Sequence record: MH383160.1 | Direction: 5' to 3' (one strand) | Length of the DNA stretch: 64,000 nucleotides | Shown: piece after piece, positions 61,190-61,665 of the stretch | Position numbering within the stretch: the stretch's first letter is position 1 | How the letters are laid out: the number at the start of each line of letters is the position of its first letter | Program-made: the position numbers and the translations under genes | The notes under the pieces: model-generated | What the model saw: only the letters and a program-made list of their open reading frames with translations | The model's database searches: none | Told to the model about the DNA's origin: nothing

Positions 61190-61665
61190 TATTGACGGGA
61201 TTTGAGGAAGGGATTTTTCTTCCCCCCACAAGGAGGGAAATTTGACGCTGATGGTATCAGAGCTATTGCATTGAAGATTACTCATAAAGAGTGCGAAAGC
61301 GGGTCATCCTGTTTCTCTCTACTTCAGTTTCATATGACGGTCTACACTTTTAAACATAGTGTATCTTCATTAAGTATCTATGCAATCAAATACTTAATGT
61401 GAGTACTCAAATTTTGGACGCAACTTTCCTGTACAAAATTCGATAACTCTCCCTTAGATAATTCGTAAGGTGTTATCCTTATATGTCTATCAAGGAACCA
61501 CCAGCTATCCTAACGTGGTTCTTTATACAGCCGCATTGCCGTGAGGGGTTCAAACTATGCCCACATCTAACGGGTTTCTTTTGCTGTTCGCACTGTCGGA
61601 CTGCTCAACTGCCCTCTACGTTTTCGAGTGGATCAGGTACATAAATATCATGCCAACAGAATTGT
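61190..61665 (-). ncRNA. Candidate ~470-nt structured non-coding RNA
   Basis: No credible ORF, more GC-rich than its flanks, at least four stems; lies between the sigma-gene terminator (extended -10 TGTGATATAAT near 61674-61684) and the next TTGACA promoter (about 61151-61179). Confidence 0.5.

Follow-up and report, generated by a model that had tools for sequence, protein, structure and literature searches.

A ~480-nt structured noncoding RNA family without a catalogued match in Rak2-like jumbo phages and small enterobacterial islands

The gap after the sigma-factor gene of Escherichia phage UB, an Asteriusvirus related to Rak2 and 121Q, holds a gene for a ~480-nt, intricately folded noncoding RNA (ncRNA) on the minus strand, the same strand as the sigma gene. 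This RNA matches no Rfam family, it occurs 3-5 times in every Rak2-like jumbo phage record that matched, and full-length copies also sit on small mobile islands in gut bacteria. The gene lies at positions 61,188 to 61,668 of the window, by which we mean the whole 64,000-nt stretch of sequence record MH383160.1 that was analyzed (Table 1). We are highly confident that it is a genuine structured ncRNA gene of a new family, while its function is unproven.

To address whether the region has the properties that had been assigned to it, we re-examined each feature of a preliminary description made from the sequence alone. That description had proposed about 470 nt without a credible ORF, richer in G+C than the flanks, containing four inverted-repeat stems (GAACCAC/GTGGTTC, TACACT/AGTGTA, CATTAAGTAT/ATACTTAATG, and GATAAC...GTTATC with a nested CCTTA/TAAGG), bounded by a terminator plus an extended -10 on one side and a new promoter on the other, and unlike tRNA, tmRNA, or RNase P RNA by eye. 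Every one of these features is present where it was placed, and the observation holds and is larger than had been thought, although no strand had been given. Between the sigma gene and the next gene, which is also on the minus strand, the longest ORFs are 66, 54, and 53 aa; they are not conserved, and indels between homologues are mostly not multiples of three (440, 190, and 92 for remainders 1, 2, and 0). The G+C content is 0.38 to 0.43 across 61100-61700, compared with 0.29 to 0.36 in most neighboring windows, which is a modest rise. All four stems are supported by changes between homologues, the GATAAC...GTTATC region by eye only.

Since comparison with Rfam had been named in advance as a way to check the proposal, we searched the whole window against the Rfam 15 covariance models at gathering score and 60900-61900 in E-value mode. 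The first search gave no match for the RNA, and the second returned only the sigma terminator and weak, chance-level matches far below gathering score. Thus, no match was found to the 6S models (6S/SsrS and related), RNase P RNA, group I or group II introns, known self-cleaving ribozymes, the ColE1 RNA I family, or the large ncRNAs GOLLD, ROOL, OLE, HEARO, and raiA, the latter neither at gathering score nor at E<=10. The element is also intergenic with its own promoter, rather than inserted in a host gene. ARAGORN found no tRNA or tmRNA gene in the window, and an 11-nt resemblance to the tmRNA 5' end (GACGGGATTTG) was dismissed because it lies on the plus strand. Literature searches by topic and by sequence string found no description of this RNA.

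The absence of conservation or covariation had been put forward as an outcome that would count against a structured RNA, and we therefore examined base pairing on 34 non-redundant homologues. In this set, 62 base pairs in 13 helices, including a 7-bp pseudoknot, are 96.2% paired, compared with 75.2% in column shuffles and 36 to 47% when the partners are slid. Forty-four of the 62 pairs show changes on both sides, and the covariation score is 0.567, against 0.07 to 0.13 for slid partners, with 0 of 500 shuffles reaching it. RNAalifold gave 58 pairs, 38 of them compensatory. The single-sequence folding z-score is only -2.2, so it is the comparison between homologues that carries the case. A first, permissive column-pair scan yielded many spurious helices caused by the relatedness of the sequences and was discarded. 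Covariance models were not built, public genomes and metagenomes were not searched with such a model, R-scape was not run, and the poorly aligned regions (61408-61491 and the stem of hairpin D) were judged from single-sequence folds instead. More than 100 positions are invariant, largely between the supported helices, and a peripheral hairpin module sits at either of two positions; we regard the long invariant blocks and the swapping module as marks of a complex tertiary fold.

A plus-strand RNA was also considered. RNAalifold energies were similar on both strands, and the strand was decided by the promoter and by the asymmetry between G.U and A.C, as G.U outnumbers A.C 127 to 14 (14 of 2051 cells), showing that G.U is tolerated on this RNA strand while A.C is not. 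The promoter, an extended -10 with an upstream box, belongs to a class that is shared with many UB genes and that in phage CBB sits mainly upstream of DNA-synthesis genes (PMC5259590). With respect to the 3' end, the window copy has no terminator-like site inside 61188-61668, whereas 14 of 34 copies (41%) have a canonical terminator-like hairpin before the conserved 3' module; these observations do not settle where the RNA ends, and the 3' end was not mapped. In addition, 12 of 34 copies carry a hairpin plus U-run right after the promoter. No transcript was measured here, and we found no transcriptome of a Rak2-like enterobacterial phage. The RNA-seq-defined ncRNA001 and ncRNA002 of the distant relative Pseudomonas phage PA5oct (PMC7318152) are not homologous, since nhmmer --max found nothing below E = 1.8 and the signature motifs are essentially absent; ncRNA003 and ncRNA004 of that phage were not compared. 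The features of the locus are collected in Table 1.

Table 1 Features of the ncRNA locus and its surroundings in the window. All features are on the minus strand; A1 is the alignment of homologues.
Coordinates	Feature	Evidence
61188..61668	The ncRNA, ~480 nt; 5' end inferred about 6-8 nt downstream of the -10; 3' end placed just after the last conserved block (box 2)	64-100% identity in the 70-71 Rak2-like phage records that matched; alignment A1
61674..61682	Extended -10 promoter element TGaTATAAT (hexamer 61679-61674, TG 61682-61681)	TGnTATAAT upstream of 33 of 34 non-redundant copies and of all four UB paralogues; equivalent promoters of two paralogues predicted with TG
61697..61702	Upstream promoter box TGGGAT, 17 nt before the -10; phage promoter class TG(G/A)GACA-N16/17-TATAAT	Same box and spacing at many promoters in the UB genome; equivalent box in CBB and GAP32 is TGAAACG, described as a 'divergent RpoD-like promoter' upstream of DNA-synthesis genes (PMC5259590)
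61593..61659	5' domain: helix H1 (61659-61652 with 61599-61593) enclosing variable hairpin H2 (61651-61639) and hairpin H3 (61628-61614), plus the conserved strand GUAGAGGGCAGUUGAGCAG	Changes on both sides in 7 of 8 pairs of H1, 4 of 4 of H2, 3 of 3 of H3
61527..61587	Domain with H4 (61587-61583 with 61531-61527) and H5 (61573-61570 with 61542-61539), and the near-invariant strand CACGGCAAUGCGGC...AUAAAG (61543-61521)	H4 and H5 100% paired; 3 covarying pairs in H4; invariant columns in A1
61495..61521	Hairpin H6 (GAACCA/UGGUUC; 61521-61516 with 61500-61495), the GAACCAC/GTGGTTC stem	All 6 pairs covary with up to 4 pair types; 97% of cells paired
61442..61491	Invariant GAUAGACAUAUAAGG (61491-61477), nested stems GGAUAAC/GUUAUC (61478-61472 with 61447-61442) and CCUUA/UAAGG, invariant AAGGGAG (61455-61449); CCUUA can pair with either the upstream or the downstream UAAGG	Compensatory variants by eye in BF, TH47, and XbC2: GAUGCA/UGCAUC in BF, GAUCGC/GCGGUC in TH47, UGAG/CUCA and UUGAGU/ACUCAA in other copies; alignment too poor for a column count
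61408..61441	Peripheral hairpin module GAAUUUUGUACAGGAAAGUUGCGUCCAAAAUUUG; swappable, carried by other copies in a different hairpin instead (A1 columns 505-545); UB paralogue 2 has both	Alignment A1; single-sequence folds
61368..61399	Hairpin D (CAUUAAGUAUUUG/UAGAUACUUAAUG), the CATTAAGTAT/ATACTTAATG stem; its loop forms the pseudoknot	Stems of up to 13-14 bp; uninterrupted stems of 4-14 bp in all 34 copies, with 23 distinct stem sequences
61265..61386	Pseudoknot: loop AUUGCAU (61386-61380) with AUGCAAU (61271-61265)	Watson-Crick in nearly all aligned sequences (99% of cells); 5 of 7 pairs changed on both sides, for example UCAUAU/AUAUGA and GUCGAAU/AUUCGAC
61272..61364	3' domain: hairpin E (helix 8; 61364-61342), the TACACT/AGTGTA stem; invariant GACCGU (61342-61337); H10 (61326-61322 with 61276-61272); H11 (61319-61315 with 61299-61295, G.U in the middle); H12 (61292-61280)	H10 and H11 100% paired with 4 covarying pairs each; hairpin E and H12 with 3 covarying pairs each
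61242..61253	Box 1 (CAUCAGCGUCAA; consensus CAUCGUCAG); followed directly by a canonical hairpin plus U-run in 14 of 34 copies, none in the window copy	A1 columns 575-627; terminator-like site predicted in UB paralogue 1 (L011 18143-18126, minus strand)
61192..61239	3' module: G+C-rich hairpin UUCCCUCC/GGGGGGAA (61239-61220) and box 2 CAAAUCCCGUCAA (61204-61192); conserved in all copies, including those with a terminator-like hairpin upstream of it	Helix 13 98% paired with 39 U.G cells, A.C mismatches rare in the whole structure, pointing to selection on this RNA strand
61151..61179	Separate sigma-70-type promoter (TTGACA-17-TAGAAT) for the next gene (60877-61086); downstream limit of the RNA unit	11 of 12 consensus matches
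61705..61734	Intrinsic, bidirectional-looking terminator of the sigma-factor gene (stem 61711-61728), separating that gene from the RNA promoter	Also found by Rfam in E-value mode; annotated as a terminator in phages G17 and UE-S1
61737..62702	Sigma-70-family sigma factor gene (321 aa); context only, not part of the RNA unit	ORF; annotated as a sigma factor in G17 and UE-S1

We next asked where else the RNA occurs. The UB genome carries four diverged paralogues, around 18, 99, 154, and 259 kb, which lie 56 to 112 kb apart, all in one orientation, in the direction of most genes. Only the copy described here is next to a sigma gene, while the others lie next to baseplate-hub and endonuclease VII genes, next to methyltransferase and cytidylyltransferase genes, and among hypothetical genes. 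The positions of the paralogues are syntenic across genera, although the positions of all copies were not compared in every complete genome, and the Asteriusvirus paralogues cluster together, a pattern that could reflect gene conversion. To look for a partner protein encoded in cis, we clustered the ORFs within 2.5 kb of 122 loci. This gave only the synteny groups of individual paralogues, the largest neighbor family covering 26 of the 122 loci, and no gene family is consistently adjacent; an HNH homing-endonuclease family lies near 15 of the loci, on either side. Full-length copies with a promoter were also found on small integrative islands (two delimited, ~10 kb each) in E. coli, Citrobacter, Serratia, and an Enterobacteriaceae MAG, among them islands of E. 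coli LR-29-1 and Citrobacter P55. Their upstream boxes are TGGGAT in E. coli and TGAAAC in Serratia and Citrobacter, the types seen in jumbo phages of similar hosts. The two delimited islands have no recognizable replication genes, one island carries a defense gene, and the island proteins have no meaningful homologues in the UB genome apart from a DUF4326 protein. Five IMG/VR pattern matches (the loci L020, L024, L041, L047, and L048) and about 100 of the 104 genome pattern matches are chance. The RNA has moved between phages and islands at least twice.

Taken together, these results establish a multidomain, pseudoknotted RNA with a promoter of its own, strong selection for base pairing on the RNA strand in at least 13 helices and one pseudoknot, more than 100 invariant positions, a peripheral module with two alternative positions, and no protein gene that travels with it. 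What follows from here is inference. We hypothesize that the transcript, made together with the DNA-synthesis genes, acts in trans as a folded RNA, either as the core of an RNP or as an RNA-only machine or ribozyme-like scaffold, in which the invariant unpaired blocks would bind a conserved partner supplied by the host or by the phage, the several paralogues would supply dosage or variant specificities, and the neighborhood to the sigma gene would be incidental. We hold this model, taken as a whole, only tentatively. No partner, ligand, or activity is identified, and the terminator-like hairpins after the promoter and before the 3' module are not explained by it. Widely spaced, co-oriented, syntenic paralogues are also not what one expects of a purely trans-acting RNA and fit a cis-acting element better. 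The interpretation offered in the preliminary description is thus partly supported: a novel phage RNA is strongly supported, a protein scaffold remains possible and lies close to our model, and a decoy for RNAP or sigma is not supported.

The strongest rival, which we consider possible but unlikely, is that each copy is a replication origin whose RNA serves as primer or initiator. In this view, a middle-type promoter would fire, the structured transcript would form or direct an RNA-DNA hybrid at or near its 3' module (G6/C-rich hairpin plus box 2), and leading-strand synthesis would be primed, combining features of T4 oriF/oriG and ColE1 RNA II; islands carrying one copy would be replicated, and possibly packaged, when a cognate jumbo phage infects. 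The number, spacing, and common orientation of the copies are in keeping with this, as are the promoter class shared with DNA-synthesis genes, the conservation of the 3' module beyond terminator-like hairpins, the clustering of the Asteriusvirus paralogues, and the presence of a full-length RNA gene, with upstream boxes of the types seen in jumbo phages of similar hosts, on islands without recognizable replication genes. T4 uses at least 5 origins, of which oriF and oriG consist of a middle-mode promoter plus an unwinding element, their transcripts prime synthesis through R-loops, and plasmids carrying them replicate in infected cells (PMC3016281). However, T4 origins share no sequence and their R-loops do not depend on specific sequence, which does not predict a 480-nt pseudoknotted RNA with more than 100 invariant positions and a swappable module, and terminator-like hairpins lie between the RNA body and the 3' module in 41% of copies. 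A G6 run with a C-rich partner lies in the 3' hairpin, and the 40 nt downstream of box 2 are about 76% A+T against 65% for the genome; as other intergenic DNA was not compared, this is not clear evidence of an unwinding element and leaves that point undecided. Selection on G.U pairs shows that the RNA fold matters but does not show a cis action, and neither initiation of DNA synthesis nor replication of DNA carrying the element was assayed. In the furthest extension of this idea, which we regard as doubtful although it is not excluded, the family would be a new kind of origin, a structured origin RNA whose fold recruits the phage replisome. The islands would have captured one copy with a promoter box of the type used by jumbo phages of their host, and an infecting Rak2-like jumbo phage would then amplify the island, and perhaps package and transduce it, making these islands a minimal satellite of jumbo phages whose only hijacking device is an RNA gene.

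The remaining explanations are all very unlikely. A decoy that binds host or phage holoenzyme as 6S RNA does would suit the adjacent sigma gene in this genus, the probable abundance of an RNA with a strong promoter and several copies, and the redirection of host RNAP by these phages, but only 1 of the 4 paralogues is next to a sigma gene, the homologues fetched from other genera and from islands have no sigma gene beside them, and the fold is not a rod with a central open-promoter-like bubble; binding to RNAP and product-RNA synthesis were not examined. A cis-acting leader of the downstream genes, such as a processive antiterminator of the put or EAR type or a giant 5' UTR, is suggested by the lack of a clear 3' terminator in many copies, including the one in the window, so that read-through into downstream genes on the same strand is possible, and by a genome full of intrinsic terminators. 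Against it, a separate strong promoter lies between the RNA and the next gene, UB paralogue 1 is convergent with its downstream neighbor, downstream genes differ between paralogues and islands, 41% of copies have a terminator-like hairpin inside the unit, and known antiterminator RNAs are 70-120 nt. A selfish mobile RNA element or ribozyme, for example a degenerate intron-like or retroelement-like unit, could account for the unrelated genomic contexts, the movement between phages and islands, the HNH family near some loci, and the direct repeats of CGUCAG that flank the 3' hairpin, which would be processing or junction sites. Yet the paralogue positions are syntenic rather than scattered, the element is not inserted in genes, no intron or known self-cleaving ribozyme model matches, the phage loci contain no reverse transcriptase or recombinase, and the element has its own promoter. 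Least likely of all is a coding region with small or degraded ORFs. Although several GenBank records annotate 3-4 'hypothetical proteins' here, we consider these spurious and reject the coding hypothesis, as the ORFs are not conserved in frame or length, the indels ignore codon phase, substitutions in stems are compensatory, and tblastn matches are short fragments that shift frame within the RNA.

Large RNAs with this much conserved structure are rare in bacteria and phages, and the known examples (RNase P, group I and II introns, tmRNA, OLE, HEARO/omega RNA, GOLLD, and ROOL) have each opened new biochemistry. The family described here lives in phages that grow on E. coli K-12 (phage Sharanji is listed with host MG1655) and is therefore directly testable by genetics, and it offers about 70 distinct sequences for structure work. 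It also links lytic jumbo phages to small islands, one of them with a defense gene, which points to a role in conflicts between mobile elements. If it proves to be an origin RNA, it would explain how 350-kb T4-like genomes start replication and would define a new route of island mobilization.

Among known systems, 6S RNA is likewise a noncoding RNA made by or for a system that reprograms RNAP, with abundance plausibly high, but it is a ~185-nt, largely double-stranded rod with a central asymmetric bubble that mimics an open promoter, in contrast to the ~480-nt multidomain fold with a pseudoknot found here, and there is no consistent link of the latter to sigma genes. The phi29 prohead RNA (pRNA) is a phage-encoded structured RNA that works as a multimer within a phage machine and is the precedent for an RNA component in phage morphogenesis or replication; it is ~174 nt, single-copy, and confined to phi29-like phages, and we found no match to it and no evidence of a packaging role. 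OLE RNA and the HEARO/omega RNAs of IscB and TnpB are large structured bacterial RNAs with many invariant nucleotides that turned out to work as RNPs, yet they are genetically linked to their protein partners (oap genes; iscB or tnpB). ColE1 RNA II is an RNA of ~550 nt whose fold controls priming. T4-type genomes have several origins with middle-type promoters, and the replication of origin-bearing plasmids in infected cells parallels a copy on islands that lack replication genes (PMC3016281), but T4 origins need only a promoter plus an A+T-rich unwinding element. GOLLD and ROOL, large ornate ncRNAs common in phages and prophages, differ from this RNA in that their hosts are Firmicutes or rumen bacteria rather than Enterobacterales, and in that this RNA has 3-5 diverged paralogues per genome and shows no association with tRNA genes (none in the window). 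Cryo-EM shows that GOLLD and ROOL form RNA-only multimeric assemblies (bioRxiv 10.1101/2024.12.08.627333), whereas multimerization was not tested here. What they have in common is that all are large (500-800 nt) RNAs with many covarying helices, pseudoknots, and long invariant junctions, of no known function, that are carried by phages and mobile elements as stand-alone genes with no obligatory protein gene beside them.

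To address whether the gap downstream of the sigma-factor gene in Escherichia phage UB (MH383160.1, Asteriusvirus), a 353-kb jumbo phage of the Rak2, 121Q, and PBECO4 group, contains a structured RNA, we first examined the sequence for reading frames, composition, and known RNA classes. The 650 bases between the two flanking genes are 100% identical to phage UB, window position equals UB position minus 198147, and the window contains no N runs. The gap has no credible ORF, the longest being 66, 54, and 53 amino acids, and its G+C content is modestly raised (0.38-0.43 against about 0.29-0.36 in most neighboring windows). 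The four stems that the preliminary description had named are all present, so that its observation of a gene-free, stem-forming gap was borne out. ARAGORN found no tRNA or tmRNA. A comparison with Rfam, which had been put forward at the outset as a check, found nothing in Rfam 15 at gathering score in the whole window, and in E-value mode it found only the sigma terminator and weak matches far below gathering score. The single-sequence folding z-score was unremarkable at -2.2, and the case therefore rests on comparison between homologues.

Coordinates of the RNA locus, its paralogues, and associated features. Window positions unless UB or another sequence is named.
Feature	Position	Strand	Remarks
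Sigma-70-family sigma factor gene	61737-62702	minus	
Intrinsic terminator of the sigma gene	about 61705-61734	minus	
TGGGAT box	61697-61702		17 nt upstream of the -10
Extended -10	61682-61674	minus	TGaTATAAT
Poorly aligned region	61408-61491		holds the nested stems
Invariant SD-like element with its internal partner CACCUUA	61449-61470	minus	UAAGGGAG
Hairpin module	61441-61408		34 nt
Loop of hairpin D (pseudoknot)	61386-61380		AUUGCAU
Pseudoknot partner	61271-61265		AUGCAAU
Separate promoter for the next gene	61179-61151		TTGACA-17-TAGAAT
Next gene	60877-61086	minus	
ORF annotated as an HNH endonuclease in 121Q and G17	59861-60649	minus	262 aa
Elements resembling the sigma-gene terminator	38413-38441, 40584-40611, 41866-41895, 46481-46509, 47565-47593, 50004-50036, 53249-53278		
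Terminator-promoter-like cassettes	UB 236560, 238731, 240013, 251396		GGGTTGACTTCGGTCAGCCC followed by TTTTTGCTATAAT
RNA copy 1	UB 18061-18530		between a baseplate-hub gene cluster and endonuclease VII
RNA copy 2	UB 98556-99093		among hypothetical genes
RNA copy 3	UB 154332-154811		near the cytidylyltransferase and DNA methyltransferase genes
RNA copy 4	UB 259327-259807		the window copy, after the sigma factor
Hairpin plus U-run after the -10	UB 154847-154875 (4847-4875 of UB segment L014)	minus	
Citrobacter amalonaticus P55 island	5170-14780 of segment L217 (JBALIF010000001.1)		~9.6 kb
E. coli LR-29-1 island	15900-26700 of segment L216 (NZ_AP027515.1)		~10.8 kb
Tandem 87-aa genes, Serratia fonticola GTA-SR07	4775-5490 of segment L191		two, near-identical

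Next, we tested whether the region is conserved. A blastn search of 50,697 phage records found it only in Rak2-like jumbo phages, in 62-71 records depending on the query, whose hosts are Escherichia, Salmonella, Klebsiella, Erwinia, Serratia, Yersinia, Pectobacterium, Cronobacter, and Xanthomonas. Identity falls to 64-72%, and each record has 3-5 matching places. When the whole UB genome was searched with nhmmer, four copies were found, the window copy included, all in the same orientation. The best matches in other genera lie in contexts like those of copies 1 and 3, or in other contexts with no sigma gene, and the sigma neighborhood is therefore incidental. Pattern scans of IMG/VR and of metagenomes, followed by nhmmer, raised the collection to 122 loci and 69 distinct full-length sequences, most of which come from contigs of 300-378 kb. 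Members of the HNH endonuclease family listed in the table lie within 2.5 kb of 15 RNA loci, on either side, as expected of a mobile homing-endonuclease gene using intergenic space. A gene for a protein that looks like an ADP-ribosylglycohydrolase (judged from its sequence and not scanned against Pfam) lies next to one RNA paralogue in several lineages (jumbo-phage contigs L032, L042, L050, L066, L092, and L110), which we take as synteny of one paralogue group and not as a general partner.

To determine which strand is transcribed, we examined the sequence flanking the copies. Just to the right of every copy, on the minus strand, lies an extended -10 (TGnTATAAT), which is present in 33 of 34 non-redundant copies. 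The architecture seen in the window, TG(G/A)GACA-N16/17-TATAAT, recurs at many promoters across the UB genome, including all four RNA loci. In the CBB, GAP32, and BF lineages the box is TGAAAC(G), which the CBB genome paper describes as a "divergent RpoD-like promoter" concentrated upstream of DNA-synthesis genes and also seen in GAP32 (PMC5259590). A consensus promoter scan called the promoters of paralogues 1 and 3 with TG, while it did not call the window copy, whose box is furthest from TTGACA. Within the supported helices, G.U pairs outnumber A.C mismatches 127 to 14. The selected strand is therefore the minus strand, in agreement with the promoter.

Lack of conservation or of covariation had been named in advance as grounds for rejecting a structured RNA. 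We aligned 34 copies less than 97% identical with MAFFT (alignment A1). RNAalifold predicted 58 pairs, 38 of them with compensatory changes. After one unsupported invariant long-range helix was dropped and a pseudoknot found by scanning column pairs was added, the structure contained 62 pairs in 13 helices. Of the cells, 96.2% form a standard pair, compared with 75.2% in column shuffles and 36-47% when partners were slid by 1-3 columns. Changes on both sides were observed for 44 of 62 pairs (34.1 in shuffles and 9-20 when slid) and in 426 cells (129 in shuffles), and the covariation score was 0.567, against 0.20 in shuffles and 0.07-0.13 when slid, with 0 of 500 shuffles reaching the observed score. 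The pseudoknot joins the loop of hairpin D to a downstream strand and is Watson-Crick in nearly all aligned sequences, with variants including UCAUAU/AUAUGA, UUCAUGU/ACAUGAA, GUCGAAU/AUUCGAC, and CUGAAUU/AAUUCAG. Hairpin D itself has 23 different stem sequences and forms up to 14 uninterrupted pairs.

For the region that aligns poorly, single-sequence folds and inspection showed the nested stems of the preliminary description, with compensatory variants. The invariant SD-like element in this region resembles a Shine-Dalgarno sequence, and its internal partner CACCUUA resembles the 3' end of 16S rRNA; in BF, CBB, and GAP32 a 7-codon mini-ORF follows the SD-like motif, but it is not conserved elsewhere, and the resemblance is probably coincidental. 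The 34-nt hairpin module occupies a different peripheral hairpin in other copies and both positions in UB paralogue 2. Swapping of peripheral elements like this is typical of RNAs with a defined tertiary fold. More than 100 columns are invariant or nearly so, largely between the supported helices. Indel lengths ignore codon phase (440, 190, and 92 for lengths mod 3 of 1, 2, and 0). In GenBank records of related phages (e.g. OR699282.2, PQ390715.1, PP886230.1, PQ330092.1, LT960551.1 g047/g048, and JN882285.1 GAP32_503A), automatic annotation places 1-4 small "hypothetical protein" CDSs across the RNA gene, which are very probably spurious.

Some features of the unit are unexplained. In 14 of 34 copies, though not in the window copy, a canonical hairpin plus U-run directly follows box 1 (consensus CAUCGUCAG), and a terminator scan called one in paralogue 1. 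The 3' module that follows, which consists of the hairpin CCCC...GGGGGGAUGAA and box 2 (CAAAUCUCGUCAG), nevertheless stays conserved everywhere. Its stem carries 39 U.G cells, and A.C mismatches are rare in the whole structure, which argues that the module is selected as RNA on the same strand. In 12 of 34 copies, a strong hairpin plus U-run starts 2-3 nt after the -10 of the RNA promoter (UB copy 3 and also the aligned copies XbC2_b, Yen904_b, L017, L021, L026, L030, L033, L038, L043, and L045, in A1 columns 1-40), so that transcripts from that promoter should meet a terminator within about 35 nt; this may be a stabilizing 5' stem-loop, an attenuator, or a terminator for upstream read-through. 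The 3' end of the window RNA has no terminator, and a separate promoter for the next gene follows. Elsewhere in the window, recurrent short elements resemble the sigma-gene terminator, and at several of them the hairpin GGGTTGACTTCGGTCAGCCC contains a TTGAC -35 and is followed by TTTTTGCTATAAT. This looks like a combined terminator-promoter cassette repeated through the presumed early region.

We went on to test whether the RNA occurs outside phages. A pattern scan of one genome per bacterial species gave about the number of matches expected by chance, by our estimate. Nonetheless, nhmmer showed five true, full-length or partial copies, in Citrobacter amalonaticus P55, Serratia sp. L9 (partial copy), Serratia sp. 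2723, Serratia fonticola GTA-SR07, and an Enterobacteriaceae MAG, and two of 5,426 complete E. coli genomes also have one. The complete copies keep the promoter, all the conserved blocks, and the 3' module, and three of them also carry a terminator-like hairpin after box 1. They lie on small integrative elements. In Citrobacter, an island inserted in the pilin gene ppdD carries a large serine recombinase, then the RNA 111 nt downstream, a 165-aa ORF, a cI/S24-type repressor with a Ner-like switch, namely a Ner-like HTH protein, three unknown ORFs, a small resolvase, and a GmrSD type IV restriction enzyme; it may be a defense island or a minimal satellite. In E. coli LR-29-1, an island between the SRP RNA gene ffs and ybaA has a tyrosine recombinase disrupted by an IS3 element, the RNA, unknown ORFs, and DUF4326, DUF488, and dual-OB genes, and it shares a 118-aa protein (73% identity) with the Citrobacter island. 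In Serratia, the RNA lies next to serine recombinase genes, and in S. fonticola GTA-SR07 two tandem genes that we take to be Rof (YaeO)-like lie beside the RNA-bearing island and tilS. Neither delimited island has recognizable replication or virion genes. The upstream promoter boxes of the islands are TGGGAT in E. coli, as in Asteriusvirus, and TGAAAC in Serratia, Citrobacter, and the MAG, as in BF, CBB, and GAP32. In a FastTree phylogeny without support values, island copies fall at two or more places among the phage paralogues, while the four Asteriusvirus paralogues cluster together, which suggests concerted evolution.

Taken together, these results show an independently promoted gene for a large, pseudoknotted RNA that is under purifying selection on its fold, is multi-copy in one phage group, and has been transferred horizontally to islands. 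That it acts as a folded RNA is our inference from these data and was not itself demonstrated. We tentatively favor a trans-acting RNP or RNA-only machine, a reading that we hold at somewhat less than even confidence. The density of invariant unpaired nucleotides, the pseudoknot, and the swappable peripheral module are the marks of RNAs such as RNase P, group I introns, OLE, GOLLD, and ROOL, and the base rate for large ornate RNAs also points that way.

The main rival, which is possible but less likely, is an origin or primer RNA. T4-type phages use at least five origins whose middle-promoter transcripts prime replication, and origin plasmids replicate in infected cells (PMC3016281). This model accounts naturally for the widely spaced, co-oriented, syntenic copies, for the promoter class, for the conserved 3' module, and for the presence on islands that lack replication genes. 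In contrast, it does not predict so elaborate and invariant a fold, because T4 origins share no sequence, and the internal terminator-like hairpins also sit awkwardly with it. The interpretation in the preliminary description was only partly supported, as a new RNA is strongly supported, but its suggestion of a sigma or RNAP decoy is unlikely. Leader or antiterminator, mobile ribozyme, and coding explanations are each at most remote possibilities.

To determine whether the RNA had been described, we searched about 8.4 million papers and preprints by topic and by exact sequence and found no description. Genome papers on UE-S1, fEgEco12, and CBB do not mention it, and the UE-S1 record marks part of it only as a "repeat_region". 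ncRNA001 and ncRNA002, two of the four RNA-seq-defined ncRNAs of the distant relative PA5oct, are unrelated. Since no Rfam 15 family matches either, we regard it as a new RNA family with no assigned kind, whose closest analogues by general character are GOLLD and ROOL.
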